DNA of 64,000 bases from Camelus dromedarius (taxonomy: Eukaryota). A program made the translations under genes and the position numbers. Each line of letters begins with the position of its first letter. Position 1 is the first letter of the stretch. Of this stretch, positions 4,173 through 34,597 are shown in pieces. The notes under the pieces were generated by a model, which ran no database searches, was not told the DNA's origin, and worked only from the letters and a program-made list of their open reading frames with translations. The stretch lies in NCBI RefSeq assembly GCF_036321535.1, contig NC_087458.1:9114001-9178000 (forward strand). The letters are read 5' to 3'.

Positions 4173-4269
4173 AGAATTAGATTCAATCATGAATATAGAC
4201 TTGAAAGAAGTTCATAATGTATTCTGGCAGAAAAAAACATTGCAGTATAATTTAAAGATGGATATCAGA

Positions 4270-4350
4270 TTATCTGTCTATCTGTCTATCTGTCTATCAT
4301 CTAGCATCTATCATCTATCTATCTATCATGCCTCTCTCCTTATCTATCTA
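4270..4350. repeat. (TCTA)n microsatellite, imperfect
   Basis: Runs of tctatctgtctatc and tcatctatct. Confidence 0.9.
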
Positions 4351-4664
4351 GGTAACGTGTGTTTGTGTGTGCATGTGTATATATAATCAGTCTAACAACA
4401 AATAGTGGAAATTCAACAATAATAACGTTGCAGAAAGGAGGACATTTCAGGATCTAATTTATATATTGGTACTTGTTACTATTCTGAGGATCTCATGTTA
4501 TTTAGATAGTTTTAAATTTACTTTTAAATAATTGAGTATATTTTAATTAAAAAAAAAAAAACAAGTAAAACCACTAAGAATCTTCCAATAGGAACATAAA
4601 GCAAAAGGTAATTTTTTTCACCACAATTAAAGAATAGAAATTTGTTTGAAAATAGCTGACAAGT

Positions 4665-8387: not shown

Positions 8388-9332
8388 TTAATGTTGTGGC
8401 AGAGAAATTGTTCTTCCCACAACTCTTTGAAGAGCTGATTTGAACTCTTTATTTCTCAAGCTGTAAACCACTGGATTGAACAATGGAGTTAGGATAGTAT
8501 AAGATACTGATATGAGAGCATCCTGGCTTGAGGAGTAGTTGGACTTAATCCTTAAGTAGATAAAGGAGGCACAGCCATAATGGACAATGACAACAATGAG
8601 GTGAGAAGCACAGGTAGAGAAAGCTTTGTACCTGCCTAATGTGGAAGGAAATTGAAGTATGGCAGAGATGATGTGAACATAGGATACCAAAATCAGTAAC
8701 AGGGGGATAACCAAGACCAATGCACAGAGCGTGATAATGACAATCTGACAAAAGTGGGTATGGTGAGATGCCACCTTGAGAACAGGAGAAATGTCACAGA
8801 AGAAGTGGTGTAGTTGGTTGGAGGAGTGGAAGGGCAGGTGAAACACCATGGATGTGATGATCTGTGCAACAGTAAAGCCACAGAAACAGGCAGCAGCCAC
8901 TAGTCCCACACACACCCCATGCCCCATGAGCACCGTGTAGCGCAGAGGGTTACAGATGGCCACGTAGCGATCATAACCCATGGCTGCCAGCAGGAAGGAG
9001 TGGGAGCAGCCTAGGAAGAGGAAGGTGAACATCTGGATGGCACAGCCCAGGAAGGAGATGGTCTTCTTCTGGGCCAGCAGGTCCACCAGCATCTTGGGTA
9101 CAATGACGAAGGTGTAGCAAGTCTCAGAGCAGGAGAGTACAGCAAGGAAGAAGTACATGGGGGTGTGCAGGGCTCTGTCCAGCACAATGGTGGAAATGAT
9201 GACGGCGTTGGTGCCCAGAGTGAACAGGTAGACGAGCAGGAAGACAACAAAGAGCAGCCGCTGCAGCCCGGCTAGAGAGGAGAAGCCGAGGAAGACAAAC
9301 TCTCTCACCAGCGTCTCATTGACCCACTCCAT
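8388..9332 (-). CDS. OR10K2: Olfactory receptor 10K2 orthologue, intact single coding exon, 314 aa (start taken as MEWVNET at 9332, not the upstream ORF start at 9395)
   Basis: OR motifs LHTPMYFFL, MGYDRYVAIC, HFFCD, KAFSTCASHL and PVVYSLRN. C-terminal half (AQIITS..., QIVI, ILQFPSTLGR, SSQDALISV) matches recalled human OR10K2. Pyrimidine tract plus AG acceptor at 9359-9358 just upstream. Confidence 0.9.
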   Translation of the reverse strand: MEWVNETLVREFVFLGFSSLAGLQRLLFVVFLLVYLFTLGTNAVIISTIVLDRALHTPMYFFLAVLSCSETCYTFVIVPKMLVDLLAQKKTISFLGCAIQMFTFLFLGCSHSFLLAAMGYDRYVAICNPLRYTVLMGHGVCVGLVAAACFCGFTVAQIITSMVFHLPFHSSNQLHHFFCDISPVLKVASHHTHFCQIVIITLCALVLVIPLLLILVSYVHIISAILQFPSTLGRYKAFSTCASHLIVVIVHYGCASFIYLRIKSNYSSSQDALISVSYTILTPLFNPVVYSLRNKEFKSALQRVVGRTISLPQH

Positions 9333-9829
9333 GGAAGGTACAGCTTCAGGAGACAGTCTGAGAGAGAGGAGAAGATGGTACTGAGGAAAATCCATTAAAA
9401 TTATAGAATCACAGGAAATTAATAACTACAAGACATGTGTTCTCAGATTTTGAGTTCTGCCTCATTCCTCCTCTTCCTGGTTTTGTAAGACATGAAGAAA
9501 TATCAAAAATTGTGCAAAGTGTGCGTCCAAGTTTGAGTCGCCACAGTATTTATAACACCATAGACAAAATGTTCTCGACACTTCTCAGATTCAACTCTCC
9601 CTTCATCTCACTTCCCAGGATGGGGCTGATGTTAAAATTTTCAGCCTCTCTAGGCTCTGCAATGCTAGTCCATTTGGTTTTACTGTCTTCACATCCTCCC
9701 ATGTTCCTACAGTTGCAAAATAAATTATCTGAATGCACTACATTTATATATATAACTCTCTAAATAACTTTATATATACTCTGCAATAGCTTTTCATTAT
9801 CATTCTCCTTATACCCACACCTTAGTTTA

Positions 9830-12234: not shown

Positions 12235-12453
12235 NNNNNNNNNNNNNNNNNNNNNNNNNNNNNNNNNNNNNNNNNNNNNNNNNNNNNNNNNNNNNNNNNN
12301 NNNNNNNNNNNNNNNNNNNNNNNNNNNNNNNNNNNNNNNNNNNNNNNNNNNNNNNNNNNNNNNNNNNNNNNNNNNNNNNNNNNNNNNNNNNNNNNNNNNN
12401 NNNNNNNNNNNNNNNNNNNNNNNNNNNNNNNNNNNNNNNNNNNNNNNNNNNNN
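12235..12453. other. Assembly gap (N run)
   Basis: N bases. Confidence 1.
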
Positions 12454-15667: not shown

Positions 15668-15841
15668 NNNNNNNNNNNNNNNNNNNNNNNNNNNNNNNNN
15701 NNNNNNNNNNNNNNNNNNNNNNNNNNNNNNNNNNNNNNNNNNNNNNNNNNNNNNNNNNNNNNNNNNNNNNNNNNNNNNNNNNNNNNNNNNNNNNNNNNNN
15801 NNNNNNNNNNNNNNNNNNNNNNNNNNNNNNNNNNNNNNNNN
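15668..15841. other. Assembly gap (N run)
   Basis: N bases. Confidence 1.
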
Positions 15842-15844
15842 NTC

Positions 15845-19860: not shown

Positions 19861-22391
19861 CACAGTGCTCTTACTGACTTGTGAGGTCAAAGACCACGTT
19901 CCCAACTATACACAGATCATTTTCTGCGCTCTCCTTTCTGTCTCTTTATTTAACTCCTTATGTTCCAGTAGCATGTTCTTTCTATGACTAAGACGTCTTA
20001 CTACTGGGAAGAGTGAGCCCCTATATCACTTATCCTTTTTCAAAAGTGTCTTATTCTTCCAAGTAAACTTTATAAATGTTTAATTTCAGGTTGCCTTCAC
20101 AATTCATGCCAGAGTTTGGATTGGAATTATATTGATTTTGGAGTAGCTTTGATGAAATTGACAACTTTATATACAGTCATTCCAGTAAAAACCATTTGTA
20201 AGGTAACAAGTAATTTATTAATAGAGCTCAACTAGATTTAAGATACTTGTTAAAAATTTAAGTTTTTGCAGAACACCCCAATGTTCCTAATGAGAACTTC
20301 TATAGGCAAAAACCTGAGAAGATAAATTTGTAATGAAACCCTCTTTTGATTCTTATAAACATTAAAGTTGAGAATCACTGGACAGATACATTGGTTTCCT
20401 GACCTAAAATTCAATAAACATTTTCCACTTAGTCTGATGCATTGCAGACTTAATTGTGATTTCTCCTGCAGAATCCATAACAGATGGACTTAATTTCCAA
20501 TGAAGACATGGGCTAATTATGCTTATGGCTTCTAGTCCCCAGGTTCCTCAACTAAGGCTACCTTTGAGAACCTTGCAATGTTATTTTTCCAAAATAAAGT
20601 TGACTTCTAATTAACCCCATGCAGGACAATGTCTCCAGGGCAGTAGATACAGCCTCAGGAGTCCAACAGTCACAGTATATGCTTCTAATATCCACACCCC
20701 ATGTTGGTCACCAGAACTTCTAAAGATGATGACTTTGGCTGGAGACGTTGAAAGTCCTGATGGATAGGGGAGGCTCCTTCTGTTGAGGCAGATGAGAGCT
20801 TCCATCTCGAGGCAGATTCACTCTCTTCTGCTGATATTTCTTCAGGCCCTGACCTTTGGCTTAGAATCTACATTTAAAGGGATCCCAGATACTGAATAGC
20901 TGCTTCTGTCTGAATTGAAAGAAGGAGAGCAATGTAGGTACTTACTGAAGTGGGGATATTGATCTAGTCTGAGGCTCTGTGGGGTCGAGACCTGAGTGAG
21001 GAGTAGTGCTTGTGGACACCTCCCTTTCGACCTCCTTAGAAGATCAGTGACAGCTTTCTGGCCAGTGCCAGGGTTATTAAGAAGGAGAACCAGGGGCTGC
21101 TTTTAACTCCAGGTACTAAAAGTGATTGGGCATCATCCATATAGTTCTCTGAAGTTTTCTTAGTGATCAGACTGGTTCATTTTTACTCCCTGCTAGATTT
21201 TCTTTACTTTTTTTTTTTTTTTTGGATTTTCATGGATTAAATGAAACATATACTAAATCTTCACTTCCTCTCTACTGTGTACTCACGTATGTTTTCAGCT
21301 ACAATTGAAATCTGATACTTAAACTCCATTTTAATATGGCAAATTCAGGATTTTCATGTGTATCTAAGAATACAAAAATTCCTTCTCTTTATTTTCTGAG
21401 GCTGTGTACATAATTTCTCTCAGTTAATTGACTGATGTTTTCCCTGAGAGAAGTATTTGAATATCTCAAAATTTTGCATTTGAAAAATCATAGGTTTGCT
21501 TCCTTTTTGAATAACCAGTACCCTCAAATATTGAGTCACTGTTTAAATCTAAATTATATAAAATTCCTTGGAGCATCTAAGGAATTAGAAAAATAAGGTA
21601 TAGAAATGTCATCTCCAAGGATTATAACATGAATTCCATCCCCAGGTTCTAGAATATCATAAAGGGACTTTGGGGATCATCTGAGTAGAGAATTTTGGAC
21701 TCTTTGAGTTGAAACGTTATTGAGGGTCAATACTCAACTCTTACCCTAAGTCAAAAACGTCTGCAAGATATTACTCAAGGAGCCTCTGCTTAAGTACCTT
21801 CCGTGCATCCTAACAGTTTATTACAGTCACTACCCTGTCACCTAATTTTAAAATAAGGAGACTAAATATCCAAGTTAAGTACCTTGGCCAAAGTCACACA
21901 AAGCTAGACCTAAAATACAGATCTTCTCACTCCAAATGGAGGGATCTTTTCTCTTAGTTTCAAGGCTTGTGGGTATTTGGCTGGAAGATCTTTTTATTCT
22001 TTTGCTGTTATATCTTTCTGTCCATAGTACTGATATGACGCCCTGTGGTGGTCTTGGATGTGTTCTTGGCCAATGGGGGCTGCTTTCTCAGATGAACTGT
22101 GCCACTGGGTCTCCATACACCATGAAAAGGGCAAATATATCAGCCACACCTCATTTAGACTGTAGGGTTATATTAATAGCATGTAGAAAATCCAGTTACC
22201 TGAAGTCAGCTATCCTCATGGGTCTTAATGAAAAATAATCCAAGCTACCTTTTTTTTTTTTTTTTTGGTATTGGCTAGATACAGGCACTCCTTCATAATC
22301 AGATAACTCTAGCTTCTGTGGTCTATAATTCCTGCTCAGTGGAGTGAGAGTATGGTAGGGATTATAGGTGAGTGAGTTGAAAAGAGACACA

Positions 22392-23063
22392 AAAAAATCT
22401 TGGGAAAATGATAAGAAAAAAGAAACTGATCATAAATTCAGATTTCCCCCAGTGTTCTGAAATAGACGGAAATCTCTTTGTCTAGGTGGAGGTGTTACAT
22501 AGGGAAACTGTCTCACTGGTTTGCCTTTTCTTCATATAATTCGTATATTCATGCATATGTATATAATGGGGATATAAATGACATATCCATTCTTTGCATT
22601 TATATGTCGTAGAAATATCTCTGGCTACAGAATGAAAAATTTCTATTATTTGTTTTAAAGGACTATAAAACCAGCATGTGTGAGTATCTTAATATTAACT
22701 TCAAATAATTATACCTACTAAGTTTAGGACCAATTTCTAGTAATGAAGAAAGAATGAAAATTATTATCTCCAAATTCTAAGGATAGATAAAGTGAGTTTC
22801 AGAAATTTTCAATCATTTAACTTAGAGTCTAGGAAACCAAAGTTTGCTACTATAAATGCAAAGAATGGATATGTCATGTATATCCCCATTATATACATAT
22901 GTATGAATATACTAATTATATGAAGAAAAGGCAAACCAATGAGACAGGTTCCCTATATAACACCTCCACCTAGACAAAGAGATTTCCGTCTGTTTCAAAA
23001 CACTAGGGGAAATCTGAATTTATGATCAGTTTCTTTTTTCTTATCATTTTCCCAAGATTTTTT
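22392..23063. repeat. Long inverted repeat: arms 22392-22604 and 22851-23063 (213 bp each), 246-bp spacer
   Basis: Hand alignment of the left arm against the reverse complement of the right arm gives 9 mismatches in 213 and no gaps. Confidence 0.97.
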
Positions 23064-24343
23064 CTAATGCAAAACCAAGAAATTCTGGTAGCAGATGCAG
23101 ATAATTCCTCAACACAAAATAATGTAAAAGTATTTAAATATACTGGAAAGTATATAAATGAAGACTGGATACAGCCTATAACTACTAAATGATTTTGCAT
23201 CCAGGGAACACAGACTTTACTTCTTAGGCTTAGGCAGCTGGGAAATACACCCATGAAAAAAAGCATGTGATATAAGGTCTAAAAATGACTTTAGAAATAG
23301 TTTTTTTTTCTAGTAGTTTGCAAACTGTGTTTAGCAGAAGAATATTCATATTCAAAAGGAACCTTATTAGAAGAACAAGTTGTAAAAGATATAAAGCCTA
23401 TGATTTGTGTCAGGGGAAAACTGCCCAGTTGTCACATTCTCTGTCACTCTCTGAGACAAGCTCTTGGACATTTTTGCAAAACTCTGTTTCTCTGAGATTC
23501 TTTGAGGTGTTTCAGAATGGGAAAAGTGAGAAGGGTTGCAACATGCATGTTAATGAGACTCTTTCTAATACTCTGATGACTCTTCTCTTCCTAAAAGAAG
23601 GAGAACGTTTTCTTTTAAGTAATGCTATCTTCTGTTCCATCCTTGGCTCACTATTCTAGTTTGCAGAACTTGAGTAATGTTTCAAACTGGTTTCAGCACT
23701 AAAGGGTGGTTTTTTCCTTATTGTTTTGGGTATCGATGTAAAATTTTTGTAATGAATCGTTGACAGAAGATATATAATATTTTTACCACGTATTTTAGCA
23801 TATAATAAGTCATCAATAAACACAAATCCTCTTACACTTTTGCTTAGAGTTTATCTAATTCTTCCTCTCCCTTCTCATTTTCTGGTTGATAATCTGAAGT
23901 TCACATGCTGTGTCTGAGCACTACTCATTTCTTTTATTCCATGCTCTGATCAAGTTCAGATAGCTGAAGTTAACCATTATTCTCAGTTTTGGAGAGCTAG
24001 TTGCCTTGGGCTTGTAGTGAGCAAGAAAAACACAATAATTCATTAGATAATTCATAAGTAAGATACAAGGGAAACCTAATAGCCAAGTGCTTAATCCTCT
24101 GCTAGAGAGAGAACATTTTCTGAGGCTCAGACAAAGCCTCCTAACTGGTCGCCAGTTATCCTATTCTGTGTTTAGCCTTAATTCTTATTTCAGCAGATGT
24201 TTCTTGGAGGGAATGAATGAGTTCCACCAAACGTTTAGAAATGCCTGCCAGCTGCAGACTTTGCGCTGAGTTTCCCGTGCATTTCTCCCTCCCTGGAGCC
24301 GGGCCTCTGGCTCTGGCTCTGGCTCTCCTGTGCAGCAGTGACC

Positions 24344-25285
24344 ATGGAGTGGGTCAATGAGACGCTGGTGAGAGAGTTTGTCTTCCTCGGCTTCTCCTCT
24401 CTAGCCGGGCTGCAGCGGCTGCTCTTTGTTGTCTTCCTGCTCGTCTACCTGTTCACTCTGGGCACCAACGCCGTCATCATTTCCACCATTGTGCTGGACA
24501 GAGCCCTGCACACCCCCATGTACTTCTTCCTTGCTGTACTCTCCTGCTCTGAGACTTGCTACACCTTCGTCATTGTACCCAAGATGCTGGTGGACCTGCT
24601 GGCCCAGAAGAAGACCATCTCCTTCCTGGGCTGTGCCATCCAGATGTTCACCTTCCTCTTCCTAGGCTGCTCCCACTCCTTCCTGCTGGCAGCCATGGGT
24701 TATGATCGCTACGTGGCCATCTGTAACCCTCTGCGCTACACGGTGCTCATGGGGCACGGGGTGTGTGTGGGACTAGTGGCTGCTGCCTGTTTCTGTGGCT
24801 TCACTGTCTCGTTGGTCACCACCTCGCTGGTATTTCGCCTGCCCTTCCACTCCTCCAACCAGCTCCATCACTTCTTCTGTGACATCTCTCCTGTCCTCAA
24901 GCTGGCATCTCATCGTTCTCGCCTCAGTCAGTTGGTCATATTCATGCTCGGTGTGTTTGTCTTGGTTATTCCACTGTTACTTATCATGGTCTCCTATGTC
25001 CGCATCATCTCTGCCGTTCTAAAAATTCCTTCTGCCGTTGGAAGATACAAAGCCTTCTCTACCTGTGCCTCCCATCTCATTGTGGTAACTGTTCATTATG
25101 GTTGTGCCTCTTTCATTTACTTAAGGCCCAAATCTAATTACTCTTCAAGTCAGGACACTCTAATATCAGTGTCCTACACCATCCTCACTCCTCTGTTCAA
25201 TCCGATGATTTACAGTCTAAGAAATAAGGAATTCAAATCAGCCCTTCGAAGAGCAATCATCCAGACTTCACATCCTGTTAATTAA
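24344..25285 (+). CDS. OR10K1: Olfactory receptor 10K1 orthologue, intact, 313 aa
   Basis: Full set of OR motifs. C-terminal half (VSLVTTSLVF, SQLVIFMLGVF, KIPSAVGRYK, SSQDTLISV) matches recalled human OR10K1. Divergent orientation to OR10K2; first ATG at 24344. Confidence 0.9.
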   Translation: MEWVNETLVREFVFLGFSSLAGLQRLLFVVFLLVYLFTLGTNAVIISTIVLDRALHTPMYFFLAVLSCSETCYTFVIVPKMLVDLLAQKKTISFLGCAIQMFTFLFLGCSHSFLLAAMGYDRYVAICNPLRYTVLMGHGVCVGLVAAACFCGFTVSLVTTSLVFRLPFHSSNQLHHFFCDISPVLKLASHRSRLSQLVIFMLGVFVLVIPLLLIMVSYVRIISAVLKIPSAVGRYKAFSTCASHLIVVTVHYGCASFIYLRPKSNYSSSQDTLISVSYTILTPLFNPMIYSLRNKEFKSALRRAIIQTSHPVN

Positions 25286-25299
25286 AGAGCCAATTTTTA

Positions 25300-28624: not shown

Positions 28625-28758
28625 NNNNNNNNNNNNNNNNNNNNNNNNNNNNNNNNNNNNNNNNNNNNNNNNNNNNNNNNNNNNNNNNNNNNNNNNNNNN
28701 NNNNNNNNNNNNNNNNNNNNNNNNNNNNNNNNNNNNNNNNNNNNNNNNNNNNNNNNNN
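28625..28758. other. Assembly gap (N run)
   Basis: N bases. Confidence 1.
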
Positions 28759-31270: not shown

Positions 31271-33655
31271 GGAAGATAATTTTGGCAATTTTCACCTAGA
31301 AACCTTCATCGATGTCTGAGAATGAAGATACCTGCATGTCACTGGACTCTTAGATAATTTGACAGAATATGAAATTTTAATTTTTATTTAGGAACTTTTA
31401 TTTCCTTATTGAGAAGAGCAGTGACAATCCAGTCATTTATTTGAATGTCAAATTTCAAAATTGTTGCCAGTGATCTCTTTTCCCCTACTCATTAGGAGTG
31501 GAAAATATGTGATCAAATGATAGAAAGGACAGTTGGATGGTGGAAAAAAGTGTAAGGATAAAGATAGAACCAACATCAAGAAGAAGGTATGGCTGCGGGA
31601 TAAGTTTTGATTTTTTTCATTGGAGGATATACAGTATTAGAAAGAAAGAACAAAAACTACAGGAAATACATGTTCAAGCATTTTTACTTAGGAGGCACAT
31701 GGTGGTGCAAAGGGGGCCAAATTGCTATAAAGTGAACTAACTGAAATGATTATTAATTAATAATGGGCTATTTAATTTATTTATTCAGGGAGCACTTGTA
31801 TCCCATATATTCTATTGACTTAAGTATTGAGCTGTGTTTTGAGGTTACACAGAGAGTAAGTTGTGGTCTTTATCTCTGAGGATGTCGAGTCTATTGAAAA
31901 GACAGCCAGGAGAAAATAATTTGGATATAATATGTTGAGTATTTTCATAAAGACACATGAAACAAGCTTTAAATAAGTCAAGCTTTAAATATATTAGAAA
32001 CAAAAAATTCTCCCTAGACACATTACAGAAAGTTCAAAAACTAGTGACTTTTAAAATTGTGAAGAATGAGTGGGCCAGAGATGAAAGTTAACATGTATTT
32101 GAGGCTGAGATCTCTCTCTCTCTCAGCGTGAAGCCTTGAAATACAAAGGCATATATAGAAAACTGTGTGTATTTTAGTGCAAGGCCTGTGTGATTAAAAT
32201 TTAGAGCATAAGGTTGTAAATGTAGATGGGGGTAGAATTAGTTGCCCTTTTAACCAACTTAAGAAATTGTCTTTAACACTACAGGTGATAAAGTTACTGA
32301 GCAAAATAATGAAAAATCAGTTTACTCTTTCCACTTGTTAAGAAGACAATTTAATTACCCTATATTTCCTTTTCCTTTTTCTTTCTTTTCATTCCTCCAA
32401 AGCTTTCTTTGAATATGTAATAACCACCTCTCCAAATTCAGGACACTATCTCCTATTTGCCAAATATTTTATGCGGCACCTAGACTCTGTTAAATAGAGT
32501 CAGTGTTTTCCATTGTAAATTTATTTTCAAACTTTAGCTCCCACATAGGTTCCAAGGATGAGTTTGTAAAAGTAAGTGACATATTGTAGGGGTTGGCAGG
32601 AGAGAATCATGGAATAGCCATTGAGTAATGCGACCTTTTTTTCCTTTCAGAAACTCCACCTTTCTTTGGATAACTAGTCACTGTCCTGAGAATGATCCTA
32701 ATAAGAGAAAATACTCAAAAAAAGGAGACCAGAAAGTTGGAATGGTAGACATGATATCTAAGGAAGAATACTAGAGGAGTTTTTGTTCCGGTCAAAAACA
32801 CAGTGTGTATTTCTTATTTATAAAGTTTAGAGATAAGGCAATTCAGAGACACAAAAGAGGAGCCAAAGCTTTTGATTCTAGTCCCATTTAAAAAATTCAC
32901 TAACCCTTTGCTAAGCAAAAGATTAAACAATGATAAAAATTCTGTTATTTGCAAAGGACTTTAACACCAACAATCACGTGCTATTAAAATTAAAAGGTTT
33001 AGTTAGGGAGATAATGGTGAAAACCACCAGATAATCAGAAAAGAAAATGAGAGAGCAGCACTTTTCTTCTCTCAGTTTGATTGAGGTATGATTGACACAC
33101 AGCCCTCATAAAATTAAGGGAACTTTGTTCTTCAAGGACAAGCACTATGAAGACAAATCAATGGTTCTGACCTAGATGAAGAAAGTATTAAAAATAGGAG
33201 GGAAGTAGATCTTCAGACATCGGTGGTATCACTGATGGAATACATGTGTCAGTAATGTGGATAAAATGATGACCACTTAAAATAATAATTAATGTAGATA
33301 AAGTTTTTTTTGAGGATTAGATTACTAAAATTTAAGCAGAGACTATAAAAGGCTACATGAAGGAGGCCTGAAGAATTGACTTTCTTTGAATAAATATCTG
33401 TACATTTGACATGAACACTTGTCACCAAATGCACTACTAAAATCAATGACAGAAAATTAGCACTGTGGGTGCATACTGATTTAGGATAATTTTTGCTTGG
33501 TTTCCAATCCTTTTTTCTCTCTCCCATGCCTGTGGCTTCTCTCTCAAACCAGACTTGTGCTAGTTACTTTATAAAGGGTAAGTCACCCTGATTTCTCACT
33601 TTCAAAGTTCTCTGGACCCGGTCACATCGACTTGACTGTGTGGGATCAACGCTCC

Positions 33656-34597
33656 ATGGCCAATTCCTCCTGCGTTACCGAGTTCCTCCTGCTGGGTTTC
33701 TCCAGCCTTGGGGAATTGCAGCGTGTCCTCTTTGTGGTCTTTCTCTGCCTCTATTTGATCATCCTGAGTGGAAACCTCACTATCATCTCAGTCATCTGCT
33801 TGGATCACGGCCTCCACACACCCATGTACTTCTTTCTAGGTGTCCTTTCCACCTCTGAGACCTTCTACACAATTGTTATCCTGCCCAAGATGCTTATCAA
33901 TCTGCTCTCTGTACTCAGGACACTCTCCTTCATGAGTTGTGTCTTCCAGATGTACTTCTTCCTTGGCTTTGCTGTCACCAATTGCCTGCTTCTGGGAGTG
34001 ATGGGCTATGATCGCTATGCTGCCATCTGTCAGCCTTTGCACTACGCCATTCTCATGAGCTGGAGGGTATGTGGGCAACTGGCAGTGACTTGTATTCTTG
34101 GTGGTTTTATAGTATCTCTGGTGGGAACAACTTTGGTCTTTAGCCTCCCTTTCTGTGGCTCCAACAAGGTCAATCATTACTTTTGTGATATTTCAGCAGT
34201 CATCCGTCTCGCCTGTGCTGACACCTACATCAATGAACTGATCATCTTTATCTGTGGGGTCTTGGTGCTTGTTGTGCCTTTGATCTTCATCTGCATCTCT
34301 TATGGATTTATTGTCTCCACTGTCCTGAAGATCTCATCAGCTGAAGGCAAGCGGAAAGCATTCTCCACCTGTGCCTCTCATCTCATCGTGGTCATTGTTC
34401 ACTACGGCTGTGCGTCCTCTGTCTACCTGCGACCCTCAGCCCAGTATACAACAGGCACAGACAGGCTGGTGACAGTGACTTACACCGTCATCACCCCACT
34501 GTTGAACCCCATGGTATACAGCCTCAGGAACAGAGATGTACAGCTGGCCATTTGGAAAATGATTAGGAAGACTGGTTTTTCTGTTAAGTCTTTATAA
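33656..34597 (+). CDS. Olfactory receptor of the OR10R subfamily (OR10R2-like; exact orthology unresolved), intact, 313 aa from first ATG (MANSSCVTEF)
   Basis: LHTPMYFFLG, LSTSETFYT, FAVTNCLLLGVMGYDRYAAIC, NKVNHYFCDISAV, DRLVTVTYT, PMVYSLRN are OR10R-type; position between OR10K1 and OR6Y1 fits. Confidence 0.85.
   Translation: MANSSCVTEFLLLGFSSLGELQRVLFVVFLCLYLIILSGNLTIISVICLDHGLHTPMYFFLGVLSTSETFYTIVILPKMLINLLSVLRTLSFMSCVFQMYFFLGFAVTNCLLLGVMGYDRYAAICQPLHYAILMSWRVCGQLAVTCILGGFIVSLVGTTLVFSLPFCGSNKVNHYFCDISAVIRLACADTYINELIIFICGVLVLVVPLIFICISYGFIVSTVLKISSAEGKRKAFSTCASHLIVVIVHYGCASSVYLRPSAQYTTGTDRLVTVTYTVITPLLNPMVYSLRNRDVQLAIWKMIRKTGFSVKSL

Follow-up and report, generated by a model that had tools for sequence, protein, structure and literature searches.

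The region upstream of an olfactory receptor gene of the dromedary (Camelus dromedarius) carries a long inverted repeat with two nearly identical arms, and the question that this locus raises is whether the structure is real, how and when it was formed, and whether its arms have been kept alike by conversion or selection or are the slowly decaying products of one mutation. The repeat was analyzed in the window (the whole stretch of DNA studied, 64,000 nucleotides in length) and by comparison with orthologous and related loci in public assemblies.

Structure and distribution of the inverted repeat

Based on repeat finding and direct comparison, the repeat consists of two gapless arms of 213 nt each, separated by 246 nt, which differ at nine positions (22450, 22457, 22463, 22498, 22507, 22516, 22542, 22553 and 22577; six transitions and three transversions) and thus share 96% identity. 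Upon recomputation, the arm coordinates, the 9 of 213 differences with their 6/3 split and the 246-bp spacer reported in the original prediction were recovered exactly. The three parts of the repeat are as follows:

22392 to 22604, forward strand: left arm, the ancestral source; collinear with the loci of Rice's whale (L003) and swamp buffalo (L004) and with an alpaca paralogue (L005)
22605 to 22850, forward strand: spacer of 246 nt, ancestral unique sequence turned into the loop of a hairpin; collinear in all three outgroup loci
22851 to 23063, reverse strand: right arm, derived from the left arm by inverted copying; absent from the three outgroup loci

Comparison of the flanks revealed no extension of the homology between the arms beyond their ends, and no target-site duplication was found, as had been said before: the octamers on either side (AGAGACAC and CTAATGCA) have no common sequence, and the best direct match between the flanks of the repeat was only 5 nt long (CAAAA). 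No other copies of the arms or the spacer were detected within the 64-kb window.

The same inverted repeat, with the same nine differences between its arms, was present in two assemblies of C. ferus and one of C. bactrianus. Both arms were also found in the alpaca orthologue (L006, one assembly), gapless, with a spacer again of 246 nt and zero indels, in a locus that shared 97.5% identity with the window over 4.1 kb. In the upstream region of the receptor gene (4-5 kb), identity of the window was 99.5% to C. ferus and 99.7% to C. bactrianus, and the latter two differed from each other by 0.2% over the same region (DNA comparisons of the locus ended at position 24400, and protein searches used window positions 24473-25282). 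In sequencing runs from 13 studies, under four organism labels, a fraction of 0.90-0.93 of the sampled 31-mers of the repeat was present. As the repeat is common to Camelus and alpaca, it predates the split between Camelini and Lamini. Fold-back chimeras are a recognised fault of some long-read libraries, yet an assembly artefact in the form of a falsely folded-back contig, which the original prediction had named as a possibility and whose probability is here vanishingly small, is excluded by the identical structure and junctions in four further assemblies from three species, by the finding of nearly all sampled 31-mers in the reads of 13 studies, and by the fixed differences with phylogenetic structure that the arms bear.

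Other features of the neighbourhood include a stretch at 21820-21960 that by eye resembles the core of a MIR SINE (containing ccaagttaagtaccttggccaaagtcacacaaagctag), an old repeat in keeping with the decayed repeats noticed nearby in the earlier reading of this DNA. A fuzzy search with consensus heads of SINEs (Alu, B1, carnivore, bovid, pig, horse, rabbit and MIR) gave no match. Two T runs of 16-18 nt (21208-21223 and 22250-22267), each followed by GG(T)ATT, are located 1042 nt apart, the second ending about 100 nt before a donor-like motif described below. Runs of N occupy positions 12235-12453 (219 nt), 15668-15842 (175 nt) and 28625-28758 (134 nt). Open reading frames of the OR10 family were observed at 8423-9334 on the reverse strand (89% DNA identity to the receptor gene beside the repeat) and at 33632-34597 on the forward strand (56% protein identity to the alpaca paralogue P0153, itself 99% identical to the receptor beside the repeat), together with weaker matches to olfactory receptors at about 47.9-48.2 kb and 56.6-56.7 kb.

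Empty sites and the origin of the right arm

The outgroup loci were those of related receptor genes in Rice's whale (L003), swamp buffalo (L004) and alpaca (L005, with receptor P0153). The last one was rejected as the alpaca orthologue, being a paralogue situated 125 kb from it, and served as the third outgroup instead. In a tree built from the upstream region, these loci were placed, with full support, as ((whale, buffalo), (alpaca paralogue, (alpaca orthologue, (window, C. ferus)))). In whale and buffalo, collinearity with the window extended from about 20.2 kb across left arm and spacer; it stopped at 22849 in the whale and 22830 in the buffalo, and restarted at 23070 and 23066, respectively, with about 20 nt in between. 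The same pattern was observed in the alpaca paralogue, where left arm, spacer and right flank are collinear and the right arm is missing. The left arm aligned with L003 (about 4208-4432), L004 (about 4302-4526) and L005 with identities of 72-80%, on a par with its surroundings, while the sole match of the right arm in these loci was the orthologue of the left arm, in reverse orientation. The empty sites are alike in whale, buffalo and alpaca paralogue (GCTATTGACTAG[A/G]AAAATGCAAAA), and the right arm of camelids replaced about 10 nt that read TGACTAGAAA in the outgroups.

Since the outgroups have the source arm and lack the right arm, it is the right arm that is the derived, inverted copy. Moreover, the four camelid arms agreed in 17 of 209 ungapped columns on a state that differed from all three outgroups, and these common derived states mean that it was the local left arm from which the copy was made, at a late stage of the camelid stem branch. 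The polarity and the local source of the duplication are demonstrated by these comparisons, which indicate that the right arm arose on the branch to the camelid orthologue of the OR10K1 locus, from pre-existing unique sequence. They support the local inverted duplication of fold-back type that had been proposed for this repeat, and the outgroup loci now identify which arm was copied.

The empty sites also bear on whether the 672-bp unit could be a non-autonomous, MITE-like DNA transposon with terminal inverted repeats of 213 bp. As in MITEs, two long and nearly identical inverted arms flank a short core, which is AT-rich. However, the sites that should be empty contain left arm and complete spacer as ordinary orthologous sequence, they lack only the right arm, this arm carries the 17 derived states of the local left arm, no target-site duplication was found, and no second copy was detected within the 64-kb window. 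An element that minus one of its arms is ordinary orthologous DNA, unlike any MITE in that the arm itself is orthologous unique sequence, leads us to rule out a transposon, which we regard as extremely improbable; that no transposon had been recognised in the original prediction agrees with empty sites that contain left arm and spacer.

The junctions are marked by two short motifs:

22593 to 22600, forward strand: TTTGCATT, at the inner end of the source arm; complement of the target-site motif AATGCAAA
23066 to 23073, forward strand: AATGCAAA, the original target site, directly after the insert; also found at the empty sites of whale, buffalo and alpaca paralogue

A second AATGCAAA, at 22855-22862, belongs to the start of the copy, and the motif thus lies on both sides of the insert. 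The inverted match between TTTGCATT and AATGCAAA that adjoins both junctions is 8-9 nt long and lies 3 nt inside the copy, offset from the inner junction, which makes it no clean microhomology of that junction; reverse-complement matches of at least 8 nt between two 31-nt windows are expected by chance in 1.5-2% of cases (shuffles, or windows paired at random at a distance of 246 nt). Microhomology at the return junction does not exceed 2 nt, both junctions having been blurred by at least 20 My of mutation.

In the four-point description of template switches, point 3 falls at about 22392, point 2 at about 22604, point 1 at about 22850, and point 4 at AATGCAAAA after the insert. This is the order 3-2-1-4, by which an inverted repeat is created with the intervening sequence as its loop, and the novel segment is the reverse complement, at 96% identity, of a nearby sequence 246 nt away. 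The copied tract (about 212 nt) is longer than the tens of nucleotides by which such events are recognised, and it represents a size outlier in the same kind of event. The copied stretch was probably 22393-22604, because the ancestral base at 22392 was a G and had no pairing partner.

The repeat is very probably the product of a single mutation in a stem camelid, by template switch or fold-back, that subsequently decayed in a neutral manner and has no function. The mutation would have occurred after the separation from whales, from ruminants and from the paralogous OR10K1 locus, and before that of camels from llamas and alpacas. As for the molecular mechanism, we infer that, during replication or break repair, a growing strand would have left its template after GCTA[C/T], at about 22850, and that synthesis would have restarted on the complementary or the nascent strand at about 22604, copying back to about 22393 and possibly two nt beyond, with a one-base slip in an A run. 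The strand would then have rejoined its first template at AATGCAAAA, found today behind the insert, and would have skipped about 10 nt of the target site. The pre-existing inverted match between TTTGCATT and AATGCAAA may have juxtaposed source and target in single-stranded DNA. Alternatively, and with the same product, a broken 3' end may have folded back within its own strand, followed by limited synthesis and end joining. From then on, arms, loop and flanks would have mutated at one neutral rate, with neither conversion between the arms nor selection on their pairing. An origin as a retrocopy was rejected, as the A/T run at the outer end belongs to the source and a poly(A) tail would be expected at the other end.

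Fold-back priming and microhomology-mediated break-induced replication at short inverted repeats are known to generate inverted duplications and palindromes in yeast and mammals. The camelid locus resembles these events in the match between TTTGCATT and AATGCAAA beside the junctions, the adjacent inverted copy, the little homology at the junctions and the small deletion. Fold-back priming usually results in palindromic amplifications of kb to Mb or in dicentric chromosomes, whereas the camelid product is a small interstitial insertion, synthesis having ended after about 212 nt and rejoined the original site.

The other known system to which the event can be compared is the short-range template switch (event type 3-2-1-4 / 1-4-3-2; Loytynoja and Goldman 2017, PMC5453318; Walker et al. 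2021, PMC7954356), in which a nearby reverse-complement copy likewise replaces a few bases and forms a new hairpin, and the ancestral state can be recovered from outgroups. Events of the order 3-2-1-4, which make inverted repeats and create hairpins, are a documented class of the four-point model in comparisons between human and chimpanzee, where they account for 31% of events called at high confidence (PMC5453318). Unlike the template switches of great apes, with copied lengths of 12 nt (median) and at most 128 nt (PMC7954356), the camelid tract reaches about 212 nt with a loop of 246 nt; and unlike those recent switches, the camelid event is tens of millions of years old.

Age of the duplication and divergence of the arms

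The four arms of camel and alpaca were compared with each other, with the following results:

camel left arm and camel right arm: 9 differences
alpaca left arm and alpaca right arm: 7 differences
left arms of camel and alpaca: 5 differences
right arms of camel and alpaca: 5 differences
cross pairs (left arm of one species and right arm of the other): 8 and 8 differences

Three of the differences between left and right arms are common to camel and alpaca (22507, 22542 and 22553), six are specific to camel (including 22392, where an A now stands in both camel arms) and three to alpaca (22398, 22550 and 22555). No site in this four-arm comparison joined the two arms of one species against those of the other. 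At 22498 the right arm of alpaca carries the state of the left arm, which could be a parallel transition or a very short conversion tract. When the nine differences between the camel arms were polarised with the outgroups, six proved to be derived on the left and three on the right, compatible with equal rates.

About 3.5 of the arm differences were assigned to the time before the camel-alpaca split (two arm lineages) and about 9.5 to the time after it (four arm lineages), so that the duplication is approximately 1.7 times as old as the split (binomial range, roughly 1.15-3.5). Published ages of the Camelini-Lamini split are about 16.3 Ma (PMC12337305), 25 Ma from mitochondrial genomes (PMC1939714) and 11 Ma by the fossil record, as cited in PMC1939714. 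The duplication would thereby date, roughly, to 20-45 My ago, on the stem of Camelidae. A strict clock set on the whale/buffalo distance was rejected, as it puts the camel-alpaca split at about 5 My, and was replaced by this dating relative to the split. The recent origin first suggested for the repeat was not borne out, given that it is gapless in both camel and alpaca and older than their separation; its arms look young because the region evolves slowly in camelids (2.5% between camel and alpaca).

The same comparisons bear on the other idea put forward in the original prediction, according to which the arms were kept alike by conversion. Under this explanation the repeat would be far older than it looks and its arms would have been homogenised by recurrent intrastrand gene conversion, as in the large palindromes of sex chromosomes; the 96% identity of the arms, set against differences of about 20% between related loci in this region, the state of the alpaca right arm at 22498, and conversion active nearby (alpaca paralogues 98-100% identical over the CDS and about 450 bp upstream, with flanks of 55-80%) are in its favour. 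Orthologous arms, however, differ at 5 and 5 positions and the arms within a species at 9 and 7, and no site pairs the arms of one species against those of the other; three arm differences older than the camel-alpaca split were retained in both lineages, and a repeat whose right arm the outgroups lack cannot be ancient. Given that orthologous arms are closer to each other than those of one species, the similarity of the arms can be explained without gene conversion, which we consider very unlikely to be its cause; their likeness fits instead a single duplication followed by slow divergence.

With respect to the alpaca OR10K1 paralogues, located 125 kb apart, identity was 93-100% (mostly 98-100%) from about 450 bp before the ATG to the stop codon, in a tract (L006:5548-6947 against L005, equivalent to about 23893-25292 of the window) with sharp edges and flanks that were 50-80% identical. 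This tract of CDS and proximal upstream sequence looks like a gene-conversion tract, and the inverted repeat is located about 830 bp outside of it. At the protein level, the alpaca paralogue matched the receptor of the window at 267/270 residues and the alpaca orthologue at 264/270. In addition, a CD1-like gene model of 378 aa (MHC_I_3, C1-set) covers the paralogous locus (L005:1-12942) with the receptor copy inside its intron; a spanning CD1-like model is not listed for the orthologue L006.

Constraint, transcription and significance

Divergence between camel and alpaca was similar in the arms (10/426, 2.35%), the spacer (5/246, 2.03%) and the remaining upstream region (89/3452, 2.58%). The changes that accumulated in the arms after the split break pairs of the stem, with 22498 as a possible exception. 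Equal divergence of arms, spacer and flanks points to neutral decay, and no sign of selection on sequence or pairing was found in the camel-alpaca divergence of these two lineages. Judging from this neutral divergence between two lineages only, the repeat is most likely without function. The idea that the repeat would be fragile as DNA is contradicted by the lengths of arms and spacer, unchanged in both lineages. In yeast, widening of the spacer from 12 to 100-200 bp lowers the instability of inverted repeats 20- to 300-fold (PMC10164571), and an indel-free repeat with a 246-bp spacer in two lineages agrees with this spacer effect.

The elements relevant to a role in RNA are:

22368 to 22373, forward strand: GTGAGT after TAG, candidate splice donor; present in camel, C. 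ferus and alpaca
24344 to 25285, forward strand: olfactory receptor CDS of 313 aa, with its ATG at 24344; an ORF named OR10K1 or OR10K1-like by NCBI in camelids

The receptor CDS lies 1.3 kb downstream of the inverted repeat; its residues 46-315 (ORF numbered from 24338) shared 98% identity with OR10K1 of C. ferus and matched 7tm_4 / 7tm_1. The motif TAG|GTGAGT stands at 22368-22373 as it had been described, and acceptor AGs do precede the ATG (24344), at 24334-24335 and 24337-24338. A (TGGCTC)x3 microsatellite (24308-24325) immediately precedes the polypyrimidine/AG acceptor and ATG of the receptor gene. The outgroups have GACATGG or GACATAG at the donor site (whale, buffalo and alpaca paralogue), and a donor motif absent from them is no older than the camelid branch. 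No upstream exon was found in the gene models of C. ferus (chromosome assembly), C. bactrianus and alpaca, the ranges of which correspond to the CDS only. Regarding transcripts, one RNA-seq run contained 13-17% of the sampled words, a share that genomic DNA or unspliced background could explain; in several runs of low depth and unclear type, the share was 17-37%. The predicted RNA fold of a 696-nt stretch reached -368 kcal/mol compared to -133 ± 8 for shuffles (z = -30), and an Rfam scan of 21500-24500 with E up to 10 returned only sub-threshold chance matches.

It is conceivable, with a small chance, that the hairpin is functional within a 5' intron, as put forward in the original prediction, or within an upstream transcript, where about 210 bp of dsRNA would be edited by ADAR or diced and would affect splicing or expression. 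Such a role is suggested by the very stable predicted fold, the TAG|GTGAGT placed 20 nt upstream of the repeat, the AG acceptors before the ATG, the 13-17% of sampled words in one RNA-seq run, and the fact that template switching is documented and proposed, in two reports, as a source of RNA hairpins and of new miRNA genes (PMC8794818; bioRxiv 10.1101/2023.04.19.537475). Against it, unpaired substitutions in the arms accumulated at the rate of the flanks (2.35% vs. 2.58%), at most one of about 10 changes in the arms after the split restores pairing, the donor motif is missing in whale, buffalo and paralogue, the gene ranges of C. ferus (chromosome assembly), C. bactrianus and alpaca consist of the CDS alone, and the small share of words in the RNA run could be genomic DNA or unspliced background. 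A narrower version, to which we attach a still lower probability, is putative: camelid hairpin and camelid donor would together form part of a lineage-specific 5' transcript of one OR10K1 paralogue, in which the dsRNA of about 210 bp is edited or diced and modulates the receptor. If this were true, dsRNA derived from one template switch would be the long-hairpin counterpart of the de novo miRNA genes ascribed to template switching.

Inverted pairs of Alu elements act as ADAR substrates. Such pairs and other long inverted repeats, studied as fragile sites (PMC10164571), resemble the camelid repeat in their arms of about 200-300 bp, high identity and potential for hairpins in RNA or single-stranded DNA; in contrast to the independent insertions of a repeat family that make up an Alu pair, the camelid arms are two copies of unique local sequence.

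The repeat itself is of little importance, being a neutral structural mutation beside one of the two camelid paralogues of OR10K1. Its value is that of a clean, dated example, in which source, copy, empty site, polarity of every subsequent substitution and minimum age can all be read from public assemblies, and it belongs to a known mutation class, of which it is an unusually long and well-dated case. An interstitial hairpin of about 210 bp, exceeding the maximum of the great-ape set, can arise in one template-switch or fold-back event, and an inverted repeat with 96% identity and a spacer of 246 bp can last free of indels in two lineages for over 11-25 million years. In slowly evolving genomes such as those of camelids, high identity between the arms of a repeat should thus not be equated with recent origin or gene conversion.
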